A DNA stretch of 64,000 nucleotides from positions 2,108,001 to 2,172,000 of the forward strand of contig JBNJNM010000012.1 in NCBI GenBank assembly GCA_052426225.1, in the 5' to 3' direction. Origin of the DNA: Zancudomyces culisetae HAW-14-8 (lineage: Eukaryota; Fungi; Kickxellomycota). Under the pieces are notes generated by a model that was not told where the DNA came from, made no database searches, and saw only the letters and a program-made list of their open reading frames with translations. Position 1 is the first letter of the stretch. Each line of letters starts with the position of its first letter. Of this stretch, positions 42,767 to 59,813 are shown piece after piece. Position numbers and translations under genes: made by a program.

Positions 42767-44538
42767 ATGGATATAGAAATGGATATGAATAGTATAAGCC
42801 AGGCTGATCTGAGTAGACTGTTTTCACAGCTCAAGGATGCCAATGATCAAGAATGTGTTTCAAAAAGGCTCGAGAGCTTTTTCAGCGAAAACAACATTAG
42901 GGCGAAAATGCAAACAGAGAATCTGGTAGAGTATTTTGCCAATTTGATGCATCAATTTGAAGATTGGTTTATATCCAGGCGCGAAAGCTATAACAATGAC
43001 ATTTTTATTACATTTATTGAAAAGTTGTTGGATATTTCCAACCAAACAACGGCCGACTACAATGAGATTGTAAGCGTTATATTGTACTTTTTCTATATGC
43101 TTTTGTAATAGATATGAAACGACGTATATATATATTGAGACTTGTGACTGTCTACTCTAAATAGAGAATAAACGCTTTAGAAAAGTATTGCGAAAGGCAA
43201 ATTCATAATTGTGGATTTGAACGTGCCTGGGAAATACTAGAGCTCTACGTCCCAACCTTTTTAGGGTAATTTCTTTATGTTTTTTTTTTTCCTTTATCGG
43301 ATTCATTTACCTCTAATTTTAAAAAAGAAAAAACACATTTACAAAGATAAAAATATACGAATAATAGGGCGAATAAGCTGTCAAATGAAAAGCTCTTTTG
43401 GTTATATATACTTCAAAGTGAAATGTATGTATTAGGCGGCAAAATAAGTCAAAGTCAAGAAACCATAAACAAAGCCGGTCAATATCTTAAAGAAGTCAAA
43501 AAAAACGAATATCTGAGAAAATTTAAATATGTACAGGGCGTTATATACGCAAAAAGCACCAAATATAACGAGGCAATGAGTAGATTTATAGAGGTTTACA
43601 GTGAATTTCAAAATAATAAACTGCAAGCTCAACAGAAAAGGCTTGATTTTGGCGGAGTTCCATACGAGATGGAAATAATAAGAGGATTTGGAATAAAATG
43701 TGTGATACTAAGCGATCCAGGATTACCACAACGGGAAATGGGGCTGAGGATGTTGGTGGCGGACAAGAAAGTTTTGGAGCAATATTCAAAGTCCTACCAG
43801 GTACTGGTAGATGTACTTGAAGAGAAATTGGTGGTTTTCTATGGAGACAGAAATGCCTATGATAAAGAATGTGTAGAACTTATGTATTCAATTTTGGAAA
43901 AGCCGGAAAAGATTTCATTTAGTAATATTCGGGATATGCGTGCAAATATAAAAGACAATGATAGCGAACAGATGGAGTTGGAGCCGGAATCCGAGGATAA
44001 AAGAGCTGCGGCTGCAGATGTGGACGTAGACATGGATTTAGGACTGAGTACCAAAATAAAAACATTGAATAAGCACCTGACAAGGCACAACATCTATGTA
44101 TTATCAAAAATATACAAAAACATCACCATAGAAAAAATGAAGCGAATACTAAACCTTGGTGAAGAATCAGTAGCCGATCTCGAGCTTTTGGTTAGAGACA
44201 CAATCTCGGCCAGAATCATTGATGCGAAGATCAACCAGGTAGATGGTAATTCGGTGGAATTTAATGAAAGAGTTTTCTACCAAAACATATTGCCGAGCAC
44301 AAATGATCCCAATGGATTGGACATCTGTCCAAGCGACGATTACTGGAAAATTGGGAAAAATATTCTTTTTACCGATACATGTTTGGTAGCCGAACCCCAT
44401 CGGCAAAACCAGCGGATGGAAACACCGCAACCTACCACAAATGGTTTTAATCCAAATAAAAACACCGAGTTTAATTTAGCCAAGACTCTAGTTGACCAGG
44501 TTAAACGAGCCACAAACTACTTAGCTTTAAAGAACTGA
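42767..44538 (+). CDS. PCI-domain protein, most like COP9 signalosome subunit 4 (highly divergent; 3 exons)
   Basis: Exons 42767-43069, 43165-43265, 43368-44538. PCI-like RHNIYVLSKIYKNITI...IDAKINQVDG. The segments INKAGQYL, KYNEAMSRF and KCVILSDPG.PQRE..LRMLVAD align better with CSN4 than with Rpn5. Confidence 0.65.
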
Positions 44539-47500
44539 GTTTGTATCTTCTCCAGCCTCTCTACGTATCTGTAGACATGCTATTATCTCAAGTATGCACT
44601 CTTGGAGGATCACAATGTTTTCTAACAACTCCATCATGTTGACATTTTGGGGTGGTGACCTTAAAACCTTGGTAGCTTTGTTGTTAGCGCTAGACGGGTC
44701 TCCACCATCACTATCGATACCACTTTCCGAATCGCCACTTTCCATTTCATGTCTGCTCAGGCTTTTCCTGGTCGAAGAATAACTCCCAAAGTCTTCCAAC
44801 TCGGCTGCCAAGTCAACCTCCAGTTCAACAACACCCATCAAGGCATTCCTGGCTCGCCTTAACCGGCCATTGAAGTTGGGAACAAATGGCCTCATCTCCT
44901 CTGCAGTTTGTACCAACGATCTTAGTGCCGTATAAATGGGTGGGAGTAACTGTTTGTTGTGGGCTAGAACTCCTTTGTTCGGTATTTCTTGGATAGTCTG
45001 CCTTAATTCTCTTGACATTTCGAATGTTTGGCTAAACCTTGGGTATTCACTAATCAGTTTTATCTGCTCGTTAATTTTTTCTATAATCTTCTTGTCCTCT
45101 GAGGATAAACTTTTGTCTGTCTTTGTCAGAATTATAATTTTATTATCTTCAAAGTCATCATGGGTACTTTCTTTTGTATTAACATTTATTTCAACACCAT
45201 CATCTGCATGTGTTTGGACCAACTCATCATTTGTCTGATCTTCTTGTTTCATCTGGGTATCATTATCTTTGCTATTTTTCATGTTTTTTACTTTGCTAAC
45301 ACCCGCAAATACAATCTTTTCCTTCTCAAATTGTTGAAAGCTAGTTTTTTTCAGTTTCTCCAACCATTGATTCCAGAGTGTTCCCAGCTCGGTTTCTCTC
45401 AGCAGTTCGTTTGGGTCAAAAGATATCAACCGATCTAGGGTCCTACAGCTAGAGCACTCTTCCTCTCCAAATACCCCACTTTCTACTTCTCTGTTGTAAT
45501 ATTCTTGGTTCTGACTATCTCCGCCAAACACATCATTGTTTCTCACTGATGCTGATGCTGCTATCGCTGTTATTACTCCAGTTACCTCTAGATTTATTTC
45601 AGGTGTTAAACTGAAATAATTCTCAAGAAGCATGACAACTCTTTGTATTAGTCTATCTGATTGTTTAATGTATTTTCGACTTCCATTTGAGTTTGCTGCG
45701 CAATGTTTATAATGCACTGGTTTGTTCTCACTTCTCAACGCATTTTGGTTGTTATCATTAGCTGGTGTTTCAGACGCTGGCTCGCTTTTACCATTAAAAA
45801 TATAACCTTGTAATTTTTTGCTACTTTCTTCGTTTTTTTCATTTCCCCTATAGCCAAGTATTTTCAAATGAGTCTGCTTATGATCGAGGTATCGCTTGGC
45901 AGCGTCTTCAAGATACGAGTCAAAGCCCTGCCTTCTCATTAAATACTTTCTGGTGCTTACCAGCTCTTCGATATCTATAGTATTATCATATACTCTCGCA
46001 TTCCTAACATCATGATAACCGTCACTACTATCGACACCATTTAGTGCACTGACCGATGTGAAAGATGGGTACGCTACGTCACCACCTGTGTTCTTCTCAG
46101 CTACTTTAGATTCACTTGGATCATGAATCAACATTTTTGTACCATACACTCCTCCACTTCCTTCTTCAGCAGTTTTGACACCTGAATTTCCACTAGGTTT
46201 TTCTTTTTTATAACCATTTATTTTGGCGCTTGCCTCAATGTATCTTATATATTCATGCACCTTGTTTACGGGAGCAATCCCTGAATGTATTAAAAGCTCT
46301 GAATACATCTCTAACTCCCTTTTATGAAGTTCAAGTCCTATCGTATAGTTTGCTAGCCAGCTATAGTTGACGGTTGAAGGTACTTCCTGCTCAGTCTCAA
46401 TTATTACCGACGCTATTGGACACCATTTTGTCAGTAGTGTCCGCAATAGCCGTAATGCAGATACTATTGAATCATTTGCCGCTGATCTGCTTATATTTGT
46501 GCATATTAAATCCTTTAGCGTAAATGGTAGGTACTGTTCTTTTTTTTTTAACGTAATAGAGTTCAAATCGTTGGAGTCATCTATACACTTATCACCAATC
46601 CCATGTATAATTGGGTTTGCGTTTTCCTCCTCACTTTTTTCGTCCAGTAGAAACTCTATTATTGTCTTTCCTACAGATGGAACGTTTAAAGTTCTTAGCA
46701 TCATATCCAAATAAAACATTACTGCTACACTACTTCCATCAATCTCACTGCTTTCCAAAACGCTCGGATAAAATACTGTTTGCAGAAAATGATCCTGTAT
46801 CGCTTGTAACATGGCTGTTGCCACTTCTTTGGAATTTACTCGCCTGCATATATCTTGCATAAATGATAATATTTTGGAAAACATTTCCATAATTTTTCCA
46901 AATTTTTCATTTCTTACATCCACAACATCATCCCTATTAACACAATCACTCTCCTCTCTTTTCAACTTTGTCTCTTTTTTACGTGCAATTTGTAACCGCC
47001 TTGGCAGTTGTGAATAAATTGCTCCAATACTTGCCGCAATTGTGGTCTCAAACCCACTTTGCTTAATCAAGTAGTCTTCAAGGGTGGATCTGTATTTTCC
47101 ATTTTCTTCCTCCCATTGTTCCTTAGCCTCTTTATCCACATTGACCAGTTCAAACAGAAACAGCAATGCGGTTCTTGAATAATCACCCGATTGTCCATCC
47201 ATATGCACAAACTTCAATAGATTCTTAAAGAGATTGAACTCAAACCTCTCTGCTTCGTTTTTCCGATACATTTGGTCATTTTTCAAGGTACTGTGGCTCC
47301 CATCACTTTCTGCGCTACTTTCTCTCTGTTTGGCAAACTGTTTGCTTTTCTCCTCCTCGTTGTTTTCTTGGATCACCCTTTTCACCCCTTTTAGTTCCTT
47401 CCATTTTTTGTCAAAGAAAAATATATTAAGCAACGCTGGAAAACCGTGTATTTTCCCACTAACAATATACATAAGCTCAACCAAATCATCTCGAAGCATT

Positions 47501-48322
47501 AGTATATTTTCTTTCTCCTCCCTTTCGATGTGTAGCCTGTTCCTTGTGGTGTCACTTTCAATAACATTCCAACTACCATACATGTTGAAATTCACATCCT
47601 TTGTCATATTTGATGCTATGTTATTTATTTGTGCATCCAGGTCGTTTGATTCGTTCATTACTCCCATATATCCTGCCACCAAATGCTTTTTTGACATTTC
47701 TTGCGCCAGCTTGGTTTTTTTGTCATCCGGTCCATTTATCTGTGCATCTGGTCCACTCTTTGGAAGCTCCATGTACTTTCTAAATATGTACAATATCGGA
47801 TCGTGGACACTCTTGTGTACGAGAAATCCATAGTCAAGCAAGTTCACTAGATTTGATATGGACTTTAAAACCTCTCTGCGAAATCCCCGTGGTCTGTCCG
47901 GTTCTGCTATTCGTACAATTTCTCCTAGTATGTTTTTTCTCAGCACAAACTCCATACACAGCCCAGTTATCAACTCCGCTGAGCATTCTCTTTTTAGCTC
48001 TTCCTGGATTATCAGGTCAGTTATGCTTTTTAGAAGGTTGGGGATTTGTGTTTGTTCGATCCTGATATCATTGTTTTTAAAATTTTTAGAATACACTTTC
48101 TATTTATTATTTTGATAATACATTTTTAGTGATATCACCAACCTTTTGATTATACTATTCTGATAAAAAACATCTTTAAAAACTCTGTTTGTATCAAAAT
48201 ATCAGGTAGGTTCTTACCACCAAGTTGTACCATGACTTTTCTAACTTTGCTAAGTTCAAAAAAGTTTTACTAGTGTCCTTTTTAGCACTGAGCCGCTTTG
48301 CCAAATTATTGAAATAATCCAT
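44527..48322 (-). CDS. FHIP/FAM160 (RAI16-like; FTS-Hook-interacting protein), 2 exons
   Basis: Exon 48322-48218 (MDYFNNLAKRL...) plus exon 48099-44527. Family motifs CMEFVLRKNIL, FLVHKSVHDPI, HMDGQSGDYSRTALL, GAIYSQLP, FLQTVFYPSVLE, NLEVTGVI and ENIVILQE. Confidence 0.85.
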
Positions 48323-50397
48323 GCTTTTCTGTGTTTAAAGTCCCTTTAGCTGCTTGAACGTGGATTTTCCGTATTGTCTTTAGCTAATTTATGTTTCCTG
48401 ATGATCAAAATATTTGCTCTTCAGTGGCAATTTACTATCCTTGCTCCTGCTCTTTCTTTTTCTTTTTCTCTTACTTTCCCTTTTTTTCCCTGTCTTTCAC
48501 TTTCTCTTCTTACTTTATTATGTTACTCGTTGTATTGCAAAAGTGTTTTTCCCGAGAATAAGTAAATTACATTTCGCTGATCGAAACCGCATAACTAGTA
48601 ATTTGAACACGATACACACCTGTGTTGTTGTATATACGCCTATATTTTTGAGCGTGCTGCCTTGTGGGTATCCAAGTATATAGCCCTTTTATCTGCCACA
48701 AAGCTCTGTACCCCTCCAGGCGCACTAATGGATCCCCAATTCTGCATTTTACCAACATATGCGAACTTTAATTTTGTGTATTTGTAAATTTCAATTTTTG
48801 ATTTTCGCTTTCTCATTCGCGCTTACGTTTTTTGAATAACGTTATTGGCTCTACTGTTTCAACTAATTTTACTGAAAAAATAATAAAGTTCCACGGGATT
48901 TTTAGAACAAACTACCACAAAAATTCTCAAAACTCCTGTAGCTTTAGCATCATTATTATCTTTTTTAATTATTAGTCCATTAATTTTTTGAAAAAACTCT
49001 ATGATTTTACTGAAAACACATATAATGGGAATGACCACATGTCCCAGATGCAAAGGCGCTCAATAGTTAAGAGGGAACCTAATGAATCAATCACACCTTA
49101 ATCCATGTGTATATATCAGTCAACAAATTAGATACAAGCAGCATCCCCACAAATTTATATGTGCGCTGCATGCTCTGAGAATTATTTGCTTTGATTTTGC
49201 ACTATTGGCTGTAATAACGGAATAATCTTATAACACTTTATTGGTTTATGTATTTTAGCCAGTAGTGAACGAACCGTGGATCAGTCAGCAACCAGGTTGT
49301 TTTCAACATTTCCGTATATCCCTGTTTACTCTTATATATCGCATATGGACATTAATTGTCAACTATCATTGGTAATATTTTATGACGGGTCATATGATAA
49401 TACACCATATTCTCATAATAATCAATTGAAAGTGGATCTTTTTATATTAAAAAATCTGTTGATTGCGTTTTATTTAAAGCGTATCGAAAAATAAAGTTAA
49501 TGTTGATATATTAATGTTGATATATCACTGTCATTTTAATGTATAAGCACACGAACAAAATTAATCTTTGGCAAATTGAGTTGATGCAAACCGATTTGAA
49601 TGAAAAACACCTTTCTTTCTTTTGTAAATAACCCCATTACAATGGAAAACAGGAGAGGCTGACCTGTGGTGAATTTTACACTAAAGCTTATTAACTATCC
49701 CTAACCGCAAAAACAGCCGCCTTCCTATGAGGGCACCATGAAAGGATGGTGGGCTATTTTTTAAGCTCTTTTTTTCTCTTTTTTTTCAGTTGTTAAACCT
49801 CAATACCAAGAGTTATAGAACCTTATATCCTTCTTACAATTATTTTTGAGAAAATGAAGTAGTTAAATTAGTACCTAGCTAGGCATATTTAGTTTGAACA
49901 TATTTAGGAAGTATCGTTTTATAGGCATCTGTATAATTTTTTCAGAAAAAAAAGCAGCTCAACAGGATTGAGTCGACTCCAAGCGTGGTGGCCACATATC
50001 ACCGCAAGAATAGCTTTACGCATTTTAAAGCACGGCTTGCCTATGGACTATCTTCCTCGCTTACACAAAATTATTGGTATACCTCTCGTTGTATCAACAA
50101 GACCACTGCACTACTAAAGTATTCCCATTCATGAGATGGCACAAGCAATAGAAACAATAACATTTTCCCTTTGTACTATTGATTCCTTATTTTTGACGAT
50201 ATGACAATCCCCAGTTGTAAATCAAACATTGATACTGTGTAGTAATTGGTAGATACAACTTACTAACTCCACCCATCACACAAACTCCAAAAATAGCCCA
50301 GTATTTAATGCATGACAAAACAAATACCATTACTAGAGTTGTGTTTTCTTTTCATTCAAAATTTATTTTCAAAAGCAAATTACCACGCTTGAAGAAA

Positions 50398-51036
50398 ATG
50401 ACAATCCGAGAGGTTAATAAGGGAAAGAGAAAAGCAGATGAAGTGGAAAAAGTGAGCCACAGACAAAAAAGTCCAGAGGCTCAGAAAGCAAAGAAGGGTA
50501 CCATCTTGCTGAATCTTGTGCTAAAGATTTTATTTAGCATTTTTTTAATATCTTCTACCATGTCATATCTACTTACAGAGTCACCATTCTGGGGGTACGA
50601 AGGTTATTACACGAACTGGAGAAATTTTGTTCCAACAAAGGACATTCTTTTAACACCAGCACAACTCTCTAAATTTGATGGTTCGGATCCAAATTTGCCA
50701 ATTTACTTAAGCATAGACGGAAACATCTACGACGTAACCCTAGGGAGGCAGTGGTACGGTAAAGGGGGAAGTTATAACGTCTTTGCAGGGAGAGATTCTA
50801 GTAGAGCATTCGCGACAAACTGCTTAAGTGATGAGTCTCACTTTACTTACGATTTACGAGATTTGACACCAGAAGAACTCAAAAATTTGAATGGCTGGAA
50901 GAGATTTTATGGTAATCATCACACGTACCACAAAGTTGGCAAGTTGGTGGGATTCACCCTCGACAAGGACAGTAAGATACCAGAAAAATGCAAAACAAAG
51001 GCCATGCCCAAACCTAAACCCAAACCCAAATCATGA
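50398..51036 (+). CDS. Membrane-associated cytochrome b5-like heme/steroid-binding protein (MAPR/Dap1-like)
   Basis: One TM segment followed by LTPAQLSKFDGSDPNLPIYLSIDGNIYDVT..R.WYGKGGSYNVFAGRDSSRAFATNC. ATG 50398 is preferred; an upstream in-frame ATG exists at 50308. Confidence 0.9.
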   Translation: MTIREVNKGKRKADEVEKVSHRQKSPEAQKAKKGTILLNLVLKILFSIFLISSTMSYLLTESPFWGYEGYYTNWRNFVPTKDILLTPAQLSKFDGSDPNLPIYLSIDGNIYDVTLGRQWYGKGGSYNVFAGRDSSRAFATNCLSDESHFTYDLRDLTPEELKNLNGWKRFYGNHHTYHKVGKLVGFTLDKDSKIPEKCKTKAMPKPKPKPKS

Positions 51037-51439: not shown

Positions 51440-52078
51440 ATGAACTTCAGGCACCTTTTTTGTAATAATAACAAATTTATTAGTCAGGTTCTCAGGCGAA
51501 CTTACAAAACGAGTGTCAACAGCGTCAAAGTGGGTCAAGTCATCGAAATTAATGGCAAAGCCTCGATATTTTTGGGAAAAGAGGTAGGGGGGACTGGAAG
51601 AGGTGGCTCTGTATTAAAGATTTCACTAAAAGACCCCGTCACCGGAGGTAAAAGCAACTTAAGGGTACACGGAAACGATCCTGTAGAGGTGCTACTACTT
51701 AGACAGATTGAGTACCAATATCTGTACAGCTTTGAAAACAAGGTCAATCTGATGAACATGTCAACATTTGAGGAACTAAGTCTGTCGCAAGATATGATTG
51801 AGGGAGGCAAAAATAATTTAAATCTACTGACTGATGGGATGCCAATCACAGTTCAGTCGCTAGAGCCAGAACCTGGCCCTATTTCATTCAGGCTGCCAGC
51901 CAGATACAAGTATAAGATCGAGAAGATCAATAGACGCACGGCCCAAGATAAAGGAACTACATACAATCCTGCATTTATTAATGATGGAAAGGTGGAAGTT
52001 AAGGTTCCAGAATTTATCGATGAGGGAGAAGAAGTTATTATAGATTTAGCAACCAAAGAATATGTATCTAGAGATTAA
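51440..52078 (+). CDS. efp: Bacterial-type translation elongation factor P, predicted mitochondrial
   Basis: Three-domain EF-P architecture: KOW-like domain I (NSVKVGQVIEING...GTGRGGS...LKDPVTG), OB domain II (YQYLYS....LMNMSTFEEL) and domain III (YNPAFINDGKVEVKVPEFIDEGEEVIIDLATKEYVSR). The ~22-aa N-terminus has no acidic residues and ends RRTY, like a presequence. Intronless. Confidence 0.9.
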   Translation: MNFRHLFCNNNKFISQVLRRTYKTSVNSVKVGQVIEINGKASIFLGKEVGGTGRGGSVLKISLKDPVTGGKSNLRVHGNDPVEVLLLRQIEYQYLYSFENKVNLMNMSTFEELSLSQDMIEGGKNNLNLLTDGMPITVQSLEPEPGPISFRLPARYKYKIEKINRRTAQDKGTTYNPAFINDGKVEVKVPEFIDEGEEVIIDLATKEYVSRD

Positions 52079-53054
52079 ACTTGATGGCGTGTATTAGCTT
52101 ATAAATAAATGGGGAGAAAAACGGTAAAACGTGCTTATTAGCGGTTTGTGCAACTTGAGTACAGGTAAACCTTCTTTAGATCAAAAGGGTTGTTCTTATT
52201 CGATGCTATACATTCTTTTGACACATGCACATAAAATTAACGAAGGTTATATCATTTGCCATTGATTCTGGTTGATGTTCAGGAAAGTGGAAAAATGAGG
52301 TAATATAGGAAACCAAAACTTTGTGCTTCTCCTTCATTTCCCAGAATCTACCAACTTTAACCACGTCACTAGCCCCCCACCCCCACCCCTTATATATTCG
52401 TAATTACAATTTATACCTCCCCCTTCTTCTCTCTCCTCTAATTCTTCTTTTGAGGAGAGCGTGACTTTCACATAAAAAGCTCATTTTGGTCCACCCCCAA
52501 GTCCTCAACCATTTTTCGTGAAGCTAAAAATGTAACAAAAAAGGGAGGGGGCAAATGGCTAAATGAAACCTGAAAAAATGGCGGGAAAATAAAACGAAGC
52601 AAAGTTGCACGTTCATGTGATTTGCTGACTATGACTAAAGAATGATTCATTTGCCGAGATAGCTCGGCAATTTTTGTTTTATTTTTGGGAACTTGCAGTG
52701 CTAACCATGCTATTGGCTAACTATAGTTCTTCGAGTTTACATAGCTTTTTCGTTTTTTGCGTAAAAATGACCACATAAAACTAATGTTCTCAAGTATCTT
52801 TCTTCATTTTCAACACCGCCTAGTTGAGGAATACACTGGTTTACCCTGACAATGCAATTTCAATTTAGGCTGGCTTGAAAAAAAAAACATTTCAAATACA
52901 CGCTTTAGTTCACTAACATTATATCCACATACCTATTTACATATATATCCACATATATCTTTTTACATTTACATATCGGGTTAAATCAAATGAATATATG
53001 CAAATACAACCAGACAACAACTTGAGAAATACAAAACTAAAACAACTTTGAAAA

Positions 53055-55005: not shown

Positions 55006-55491
55006 TTAGTTGGGCCGTGCCTGGAGTGACTTCTTCTTCCGATAATCATTTATTGCGGATTTTATTGCGTCTTCAGCAAGCATAGAGCAATGTAGTTTTA
55101 CCGGTGGGAGGCAAAGGTCCTTGGCTATATCTGTGTTTCTAATATTCTTTGCTTCATCGAGTTTCATTCCCTTGACCATTTCAGATGCATAGCTAGACGA
55201 AGCGATCGCTGACCCGCATCCAAATGTCTTGAATTTGACATCAACTATTTTTCCATTGTCATCGACCTTAATCTGGAGACGCATAACGTCACCACATGCT
55301 GGTGCTCCGACGAGGCCTGTGCCGACGTTGGGATCGTTTTTGTCCAAAGTGCCCACGTTTCTTGGGTTTTCATAGTGATCATGAACCCTTTCGTGGTAGG
55401 CCCTAACCAAACTAGCACCATTGCCCGAGACCGCGGTTCTTACTCCGCTGCTGGATCTCAATACTGATCTACTCAAAGCCCGAAAAATCAT
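55006..55491 (-). CDS. ISU1: Mitochondrial iron-sulfur cluster scaffold protein
   Basis: DHYENPRNVG, GAPACGDVMRLQI, FKTFGCGSAIASS and LPPVKLHCSMLAEDAI; Arg/Ser-rich presequence. Confidence 0.97.
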   Translation of the reverse strand: MIFRALSRSVLRSSSGVRTAVSGNGASLVRAYHERVHDHYENPRNVGTLDKNDPNVGTGLVGAPACGDVMRLQIKVDDNGKIVDVKFKTFGCGSAIASSSYASEMVKGMKLDEAKNIRNTDIAKDLCLPPVKLHCSMLAEDAIKSAINDYRKKKSLQARPN

Positions 55492-58400: not shown

Positions 58401-59813
58401 TAAAACTACCTCTGTCAATTAGCAGACCATTTCGAAAAAAACAAACAAAAAATGTGAATTTTAAAACCTGTTTTTTTTTGTTTTTAATAGAAGCAGAAAT
58501 ACCTGGTTTTTTTCGTTACACTCTATGATTATTATTACGCATAATTTTGAATTGCAAGGGTTTAATGCGCTAAAAACAGTGCAATTACTAATCTGGCCCT
58601 TCCTTTAGCCTTACATTTAGCGAAATGACAACAAACTGAACTTGAATTGTATTTGTACAAAGCATAATACTGACTGTAATAACCAATATCAACAAAAGGT
58701 ACAGCTTAATTATGGCTCCAAAATACGCCAAATTGGTCATTACCGATTTAATTGATGTTCCAGAAAAATGTCAATCAGTTTATAATTGCAATGAAAATGC
58801 AACTCTCGCACAATTTTAACACTAGTTGATAAATTATAGACCCAAAGTCGATCCACAAAATAGTATTAGAATAGTACCTGAATCTACCCATGGTATTAAC
58901 GTCGCATCTCACTTTTAAAAGGTCATTATGCCGGGTAAAAACAGTTGACTGTAAATTTATATTTCTGCAAATGCTATGATTATCACAACGAATTCCGCTA
59001 ATATATTTATTCTTTCAACACAAAAGGGATTTCCTAAATAGATACAAAACAGTTGAATTTCACCCACCCATCACACTGATTGCAAATTATGTGGCTAGAA
59101 ATAGAACATACGTGTTTTTGATATACCTTCCAACTCAGCCTGTCCGTTTATCAAAACAAAAGAACTATATGCTTTAGACGCCAAGTGATTATGGGCCATA
59201 AGCATTCTGTCAAATCAAAACATTGCACTATTTTTTTACATTCGCTCATTGTGTTTGTTTATTCATTCTAGACAAAGGCGTGAGTTTTTGCTCACGTGTG
59301 CTGATTCTTTTATGATGTGTGCTCAACAAAACGATAGTGAAAATATGAGTCTGAAGGTGTGTGTAAGGTAATAGTGTATATATAGATTTGGATAATGTCA
59401 TTTTCAACGTAAAAGCGCGTGAATTATAAAAAATAGATTTCTTTGATTTTGACTCTGACATTAAATGTGGATGCAGGGCAGAAACAAAGAAAATAACACT
59501 GATGTTGAAGTTCTGTATGTCAGTTAAAAAACACCCTTTCTTCTCTGGAAATTTACGCGGAGGAATATTTATAGAAACTGTCAATGGTTAAACACATGTA
59601 GTACCAATACTCACTGTTAATTGGATAGATACCAATTAGTTGATTTATATTTGATAGTGGTGTTAATGTTACCGCGTTTGCCTCGCCTTTTAATTTAGAT
59701 GCACATATACGCTTGAAACTGCATTTGAAAATCACTTGTCAATATAAATGATTTACATCAAATATAATAAACATTAAAAAAATATGAATGGGAAAATGGG
59801 AACTGGGAAAACA

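Follow-up and report, generated by a model that had tools for sequence, protein, structure and literature searches.

Mitochondria are stated to lack elongation factor P (EF-P) in a recent paper and a recent review (NAR 2024, PMC11381339; NAR review 2026, PMC12856214), and a further study likewise holds that they lack EF-P and have retained a single strategy, TACO1 (Nat Commun 2026, PMC12996406). A mitochondrial EF-P is listed for the protist Andalucia godoyi, and its supplementary sequence contains three domains and an Arg-type loop (PMC7050145). Plasmodium PF3D7_0913400 is a predicted mitochondrial EF-P belonging to a family that the authors describe as not previously observed in mitochondria (PMC8550323). 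Among the bacterial factors, EfpL functions with an unmodified Arg, has a loop extended by two residues and carries a proline three positions before the Arg (PMC11611912). The unmodified K34R variant of E. coli EF-P retains ~20% activity, and in E. coli, EarP-type EF-Ps, whose Arg loop has seven residues, either fail to act or are inhibitory when left unmodified (PMC6544042). In about half of bacterial genomes an EF-P is found whose type is unknown; Arg types are among these (PMC11388002).

We analyzed a stretch of 64,000 nucleotides (the window) from the fungus Zancudomyces culisetae HAW-14-8, in which a sequence-only reading had proposed an intact, intronless, three-domain EF-P. This assignment was borne out by the open reading frame, which is preceded by an in-frame TAA 9 nt before the ATG, by the domain searches and by the predicted fold (Table 1). 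The Pfam models EFP_N (24 bits), EFP (39.8 bits) and Elong-fact-P_C (37.2 bits) all exceeded their curated cut-offs, in agreement with the KOW + OB + OB architecture of the EF-P family, and efp (TIGR00038) was the top-ranked NCBIfam model with 103 bits, which is below its equivalog cut-off of 186. The AlphaFold model has a mean pLDDT of 85 and is matched by solved EF-Ps at an E value of 1e-15 and a TM score of ~0.6-0.7, while eIF5A ranks behind. That domain III excludes an eIF5A had also been proposed from the letters, and this identity was indeed ruled out by the third domain detected with Pfam and by a separate eIF5A gene elsewhere in the genome, where the EF-P locus itself is single. Bacterial contamination was ruled out as well, given the host-like base composition (GC and GC3 both 0.40, the same as in neighboring genes), the 27-Mb fungal assembly and the presence of introns in the orthologues. 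Taken together, the predicted product is shown to be an intact three-domain protein under strong constraint.

Table 1. Positions within the window of the EF-P gene, its parts and its upstream neighbor.
Feature	Position	Strand	Basis or occurrence
Cytochrome-b5/MAPR-type gene, upstream neighbor, not part of the system	50308..51036	+	ORF, database match
Mitochondrial-type EF-P gene, intronless ORF, 212 aa	51440..52078	+	ORF translation, Pfam, AlphaFold model
Presequence-like leader, residues 1-22, basic, without acidic residue, ending R-R-T-Y	51440..51505	+	Composition
Domain I, KOW-like (EFP_N, residues 25-81)	51512..51682	+	Pfam
Beta3-beta4 loop GTGRGGS, canonical 7 residues, no proline, Arg54 at the tip	51590..51610	+	Model, alignment
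Lost ancestral intron site, before residue 61, phase 0	51619..51620	+	In Rhizopus, Smittium, Mortierella, Erythranthe, Calypogeia
Lost ancestral intron site, residue 84, phase 1	51689..51690	+	In Rhizopus, Smittium, Allomyces, Erythranthe, Calypogeia
Domain II, OB fold (EFP, residues 91-144)	51710..51871	+	Pfam
Lost ancestral intron site, residue 132, phase 1	51833..51834	+	In Rhizopus, Smittium, Furculomyces, Allomyces, Erythranthe, Calypogeia
Domain III loop 1, remodelled; Lys171-Gly172 replaces KG(D/Q)T of the bacterial position	51932..51961	+	Alignment
Domain III, OB fold (Elong-fact-P_C, residues 173-211), near-invariant Tyr208 and Arg211	51956..52072	+	Pfam
Possible polyadenylation signal AATAAA, 26 nt past the EF-P stop	52104..52109	+	Sequence only

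The public NCBI gene model (300 aa) is identical to our EF-P over residues 51-212 and fuses it to the upstream cytochrome-b5/MAPR gene via a predicted intron from 50972 to ~51588, under the product name progesterone receptor component. Although the predicted junction has a GTAAG donor and an AG acceptor, the cytochrome-b5 reading frame continues in frame to its own stop, the fusion would delete the EF-P leader and half of domain I, residues 20-50 of EF-P, which it skips, are conserved, and every other EF-P orthologue is a stand-alone protein. It is therefore highly improbable that the true product is a cytochrome-b5/EF-P fusion, or that the gene encodes a cytosolic protein or is a decaying relic, and the fused model is likely an annotation artefact. 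Such a model would explain why the EF-P of Z. culisetae has escaped notice. Many of the Mucorales gene models, with a length of ~156 aa, are devoid of domain I and the leader, while the 147-aa model of Smittium mucronatum is without the middle part of EF-P; both probably reflect missed exons, which hide the family in databases. With respect to the surroundings of the gene, a class I/II aminotransferase gene adjoins EF-P in Furculomyces and Smittium megazygosporum and not in Zancudomyces, a matter of local synteny only. The window also contains an ordinary ISU1/NifU iron-sulphur scaffold gene with a clear mitochondrial leader (55006-55491, minus strand) and a convergent pair, encoding a long helical protein (44527-48096, minus strand) and a PCI-domain-like protein (43423-44538, plus strand), whose 3' ends overlap by 12 nt.

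The presequence-like character of the N-terminus, likewise suggested beforehand, was confirmed by its composition. Residues 1-20 comprise four basic and no acidic residues, and the AlphaFold pLDDT is below 50 over residues 1-17. An acidic residue is absent from the leaders of 61 of 70 fungal orthologues and present in the other nine, with a mean basic count of 4.9. Arg20 is invariant in the orthologue alignment, and a cleavage site in this leader may be placed by the R-2/R-3 rule.

EF-Ps have a basic residue topping the beta3-beta4 loop, which is Arg54 in Zancudomyces. Its codon (AGA, 51599-51601) is found exactly where the sequence-only reading had placed it, and in the AlphaFold model the residue occupies the loop center between strands 40-50 and 58-64. 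The tip Arg is present in 83 of 84 fungal-clade sequences, the remaining one being gapped at this position, and its surroundings are also well conserved (Gly53 and Lys60 each in 80/84, Arg75 in 82/84). At the other end of the protein, Tyr208 is found in 82/84 sequences, and residue 211 is Arg in 78/84 and Lys in 5/84; we take these two positions to be equivalent to the Tyr and Arg conserved at the C-terminal end of bacterial EF-P, through which it contacts the small subunit. The replacement of the bacterial KGDT loop in domain III was verified by alignment, with Lys171 in 75/84 and Gly172 in 79/84 fungal-clade sequences. In E. coli EF-P this loop contacts the E-site codon via D145 and T146 (PMC12856214). 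The G-D-T contacts are missing from the Zancudomyces protein and the loop is remodelled in all fungal members; Alphaproteobacteria carry GQT here, showing that G-D-T is not universal.

A full HMM search together with name look-ups revealed orthologues in Zoopago-, Mucoro-, Blastocladio- and Chytridiomycota, including Rhizopus, Bifiguratus, Mortierella, Acaulospora, Basidiobolus, Neoconidiobolus, Allomyces, Globomyces, Ramicandelaber, Caulochytrium and about thirty Mucoromycotina species. UniRef labels many of these fungal proteins automatically as 'Elongation factor P'. No member was seen in Ascomycota, Basidiomycota or animals among the named matches of the HMM search. Since Mucoromycota and Zoopagomycota both possess EF-P, its absence in yeast represents a loss, given the accepted fungal phylogeny. 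Word searches had matched only Kickxellomycotina and suggested a horizontal transfer specific to Harpellales or Kickxellomycotina, a notion that was overturned by the full HMM search. The next relatives are found in land plants, streptophyte algae, the glaucophyte Cyanophora, Diphylleia and the amoebozoan Stenamoeba, all with an Arg tip. Thus, the earlier proposal that this fungus has kept an EF-P held for the gene and its Arg tip but not as a peculiarity of Zancudomyces, as the factor is common to early-diverging fungi, plants and Andalucia. Organelle-type EF-Ps of oomycetes and haptophytes retain the Lys-type PGKG loop, so at least one change of the tip residue took place among eukaryotes.

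To address the origin of the gene, which the sequence-only reading had left between endosymbiont and horizontal transfer, we consider its relatives and its introns. The named relatives of the best-scoring bacterial match were almost all Alphaproteobacteria. When scored with the fungal profile, the named alphaproteobacterial EF-Ps reached 137-157 bits and other alpha-like ones 87-130 bits (the two groups together mostly 110-157, with two sequences at 87-94), EF-Ps encoded beside earP 73-87 bits and gammaproteobacterial-type ones 69-91 bits. The alpha signatures xERFR and YKPAxLxNG are common to fungal and alphaproteobacterial EF-Ps. We relied on a fast C20 tree and on a smaller one under LG+F+G4, with the loop columns omitted from the latter and from the AU tests; rows with less than 80% coverage were excluded from one tree set and 31 redundant rows from another. 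The fungal EF-Ps formed one clade in one tree (support 99) and a clade with one Lys-type row as sister in another (99.3/99), and the branching within it broadly follows fungal relationships. This clade falls in the same part of the trees as alphaproteobacterial EF-Ps and those of other eukaryotes and lies apart from the EarP-type, EfpL, plastid-like and further Arg-type sequences; here the classes alpha-like, gammaproteobacterial-type and Arg-type bacteria are sequence-based guesses except for the named alphaproteobacterial loci. Support is only 87/66 for the clade that unites one alpha-like row with all eukaryotic sequences.

If fungi had acquired the gene horizontally, not via the mitochondrial endosymbiont but from a bacterium with an Arg-type EF-P (EarP-type, EfpL or Patescibacteria-like), this would account for the resemblance of the fungal tip loop to Arg-type bacterial loops, and the best sequence match in the PDB is indeed P. 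aeruginosa EF-P. The AU tests, which had low power here, left groupings of fungi with EfpL (p = 0.17) and with Patescibacteria-like sequences (p = 0.098) unrejected, as they did the monophyly of all eukaryotic sequences (p = 0.42). However, groupings of fungi with EarP-type sequences (p = 0.041) and with EarP-type and other Arg-type bacteria (p = 0.012) were both rejected, the best bacterial scores come from Alphaproteobacteria, and three introns are common to fungi and land plants.

The introns largely refute such a transfer. Each of the three occurs in Rhizopus, Smittium, Erythranthe and Calypogeia, the last two being land plants, without any difference in position or phase; all three are absent from the Zancudomyces copy, and none is present in the oomycete gene. 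The chance that three of four recurrent fungal introns match among ten plant introns is 2e-5, rising to 0.0025 with a five-fold and to 0.019 with a ten-fold site bias. The EF-P gene had therefore entered the nucleus and acquired introns by the time plants and fungi diverged. We regard gene structure as the decisive evidence on the origin, and a transfer from an Arg-type bacterium as extremely improbable. Judged from the introns and the alphaproteobacterial best matches, and with the modest deep tree support in mind, the Zancudomyces gene is an ancient, vertically inherited and endosymbiont-derived EF-P, so that of the two origins initially considered the endosymbiont stands and horizontal transfer falls.

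The suggestion that Arg54 has neither of the described modification partners was supported by genome searches. EarP was not found in the genome by a search that was positive in 9 of 61 proteobacterial genomes, and no EpmA was detected, the four best EpmA-like matches being two LysRS, an AspRS and an AsnRS. The EpmA-type combination of a Lys tip in PGKG with an epmA gene does not occur in Zancudomyces. An EarP-type identity was rejected on account of the missing earP gene, the AU result and the position outside the EarP-type clade in the trees. An EfpL/YeiP identity was rejected on account of the 7-residue loop, the lack of a proline, the single EF-P locus and a score of 59 bits against a cut-off of 216. 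As neither EarP nor EpmA is encoded, we read Arg54 as unmodified, which we hold to be somewhat more probable than action through a further modifier. The same protein could, in the same place and compatibly with our preferred reading, carry an Arg54 modified by a new mitochondrial enzyme. Its loop is of canonical length and proline-free like that of rhamnosylated EF-Ps, a type that depends on its modification, and the many bacterial EF-Ps of unknown type cited above include Arg types. This possibility is a reasonable one yet the weaker of the two, because EarP is absent, because the lineage descends from a Lys-type alphaproteobacterial EF-P rather than an EarP-type one, and because no candidate modifier gene lies beside EF-P in the loci examined.

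The mitochondrial genome is represented in the assembly by contig C18 (61,188 bp, 18% GC, one tRNA-Pro). It uses the standard code with TGG only and a tRNA-Trp CCA, and its cox2 segment 292-708 is repeated at 58946-59362, probably because the ends of a circular molecule overlap in the assembly. The count of proline motifs that had been called for, with cox1 read exon by exon and unjoined, gave five diprolines in the mtDNA-encoded proteins (LPPS and YPPL in Cox1, WPPL in Cox3, RPPF in Nad1 and IPPF in Nad2), while no PPP was seen in the core genes, where exons below the ORF filter could escape. The C-terminal motif of Cox1 reads SPTP, at a position that harbors consecutive prolines in many species.

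The mitochondrial tRNA-Pro (L141:6110-6184, minus strand) has kept the bacterial C1-G72/A73 acceptor end. Its D-arm has a 4-bp stem with G12-C23 but U13-A22 and an 8-nt D-loop, and thus departs from the bacterial pattern of a 9-nt D-loop with G-C pairs at both 12/23 and 13/22. Stimulation by E. coli EF-P is essentially abolished when the 9-nt D-loop of tRNA-Pro loses one base (PMC4890201), and therefore the mitochondrial factor must either read the tRNA differently or act otherwise. The D-loop and the loss of the E-site-codon contacts speak most strongly against the bacterial mechanism having simply been carried over. Both features would also suit a mitochondrial, E-site-binding EF-P that is no longer proline-specific and acts as a general stimulator of peptidyl transfer or of the first peptide bond, more like eIF5A, as would the scarcity of proline motifs in mtDNA proteins and the reach of EF-P and eIF5A target spectra beyond PP (PMC12856214). 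We consider this unlikely: with three G-C pairs, the D-stem of tRNA-Pro is among the most GC-rich of the mitochondrial tRNAs, which in so AT-rich a genome suggests a retained constraint, and TACO1, the other factor for PP rescue, was undetected.

Searches of the genome with PF01709, PF20772, TIGR01033, NF001030 and an alphaproteobacterial YebC query yielded no candidate for TACO1/YebC. Bacterial controls were positive, and a divergent, interrupted mitochondrial ribosome recycling factor was recovered at 37 bits. TACO1 thus seems to be missing from the Zancudomyces genome, although a very divergent or heavily spliced copy might escape; such a loss, if real, would be unusual among mitochondriate fungi.

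In our preferred reading, to which we assign a probability of about 0.72, the Zancudomyces gene encodes a mitochondrial EF-P of endosymbiont origin, which helps mitoribosomes to get past diprolines and which was kept in early-diverging fungi but lost in yeast and mammals. The leader would import the protein into the matrix and be cleaved near Arg20, EF-P would bind the E site of the mitoribosome, and Arg54 would steady the CCA end in the P site during slow, proline-containing steps, for which the PP sites of Cox1, Cox3, Nad1 and Nad2 are the candidate substrates. More tentatively, and at somewhat less than even odds for the whole, LECA may have possessed both EF-P and TACO1, which were then lost differentially, such that Zancudomyces mirrors yeast and man and its mitoribosome relies on an Arg-tip EF-P alone; this would go together with an undescribed activation, by a bare Arg or a new Arg modification, and with a tRNA-Pro whose D-loop breaks the bacterial rule.

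In the open literature we found nothing on a mitochondrial EF-P of fungi, on an Arg-tip subfamily spanning eukaryotes or on its origin. The novelty claimed by the sequence-only reading hence applies to the fungal system, whereas mitochondrial EF-P as such had already been predicted in two protists. As far as we have read, an Arg-tip, EarP-independent mitochondrial EF-P lineage is placed in fungi here for the first time. Our results indicate that the statement that mitochondria lack EF-P holds for yeast and animals only, and a presequence-bearing EF-P with introns shared between plants and fungi is likely the ancestral state. Among the organisms that have retained a mitochondrial EF-P, early-diverging fungi are those most closely related to yeast, and Mucor, Rhizopus and plants offer a tractable system for studying why EF-P was lost, whether EF-P and TACO1 can stand in for one another and how the Arg tip works without EarP. 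If essential, a factor that occurs in Mucorales but is absent from human mitochondria would also be of medical interest.

The EF-Ps of Andalucia and Plasmodium are, like that of Zancudomyces, nuclear-encoded and predicted to be mitochondrial. Both appear as entries in lists, with neither a functional nor a phylogenetic analysis, and the passages on them mention no fungal member. The Plasmodium protein differs from the fungal one in having no domain III. TACO1/YebC (DPC29 in yeast) has the same proposed job of relieving mitoribosome stalls at prolines, but its fold is unrelated to that of EF-P and it binds beside the A site (PMC12996406). Among the bacterial factors, EfpL/YeiP shares the Arg tip, but its loop comprises nine residues, among them a conserved proline, and it always occurs beside another EF-P, in contrast to the sole EF-P of Zancudomyces with its loop of seven. 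The PGKGP loop of the unmodified-type EF-Ps is unlike the proline-free loop of Zancudomyces. EarP-type EF-Ps have in common with the fungal protein the Arg tip, the loop length, the Gly preceding the Arg and the missing proline; considering the absence of EarP and the rejected grouping, we regard this likeness as convergent. The alphaproteobacterial Lys-type EF-P has the same three-domain fold, 7-residue tip loop, C-terminal Tyr and Arg and alpha signatures, and from it the fungal factor differs by its nuclear gene and leader, by Arg in place of Lys in a proline-free loop and by the remodelled domain III loop, the lack of EpmA and a score below the TIGR00038 equivalog cut-off.
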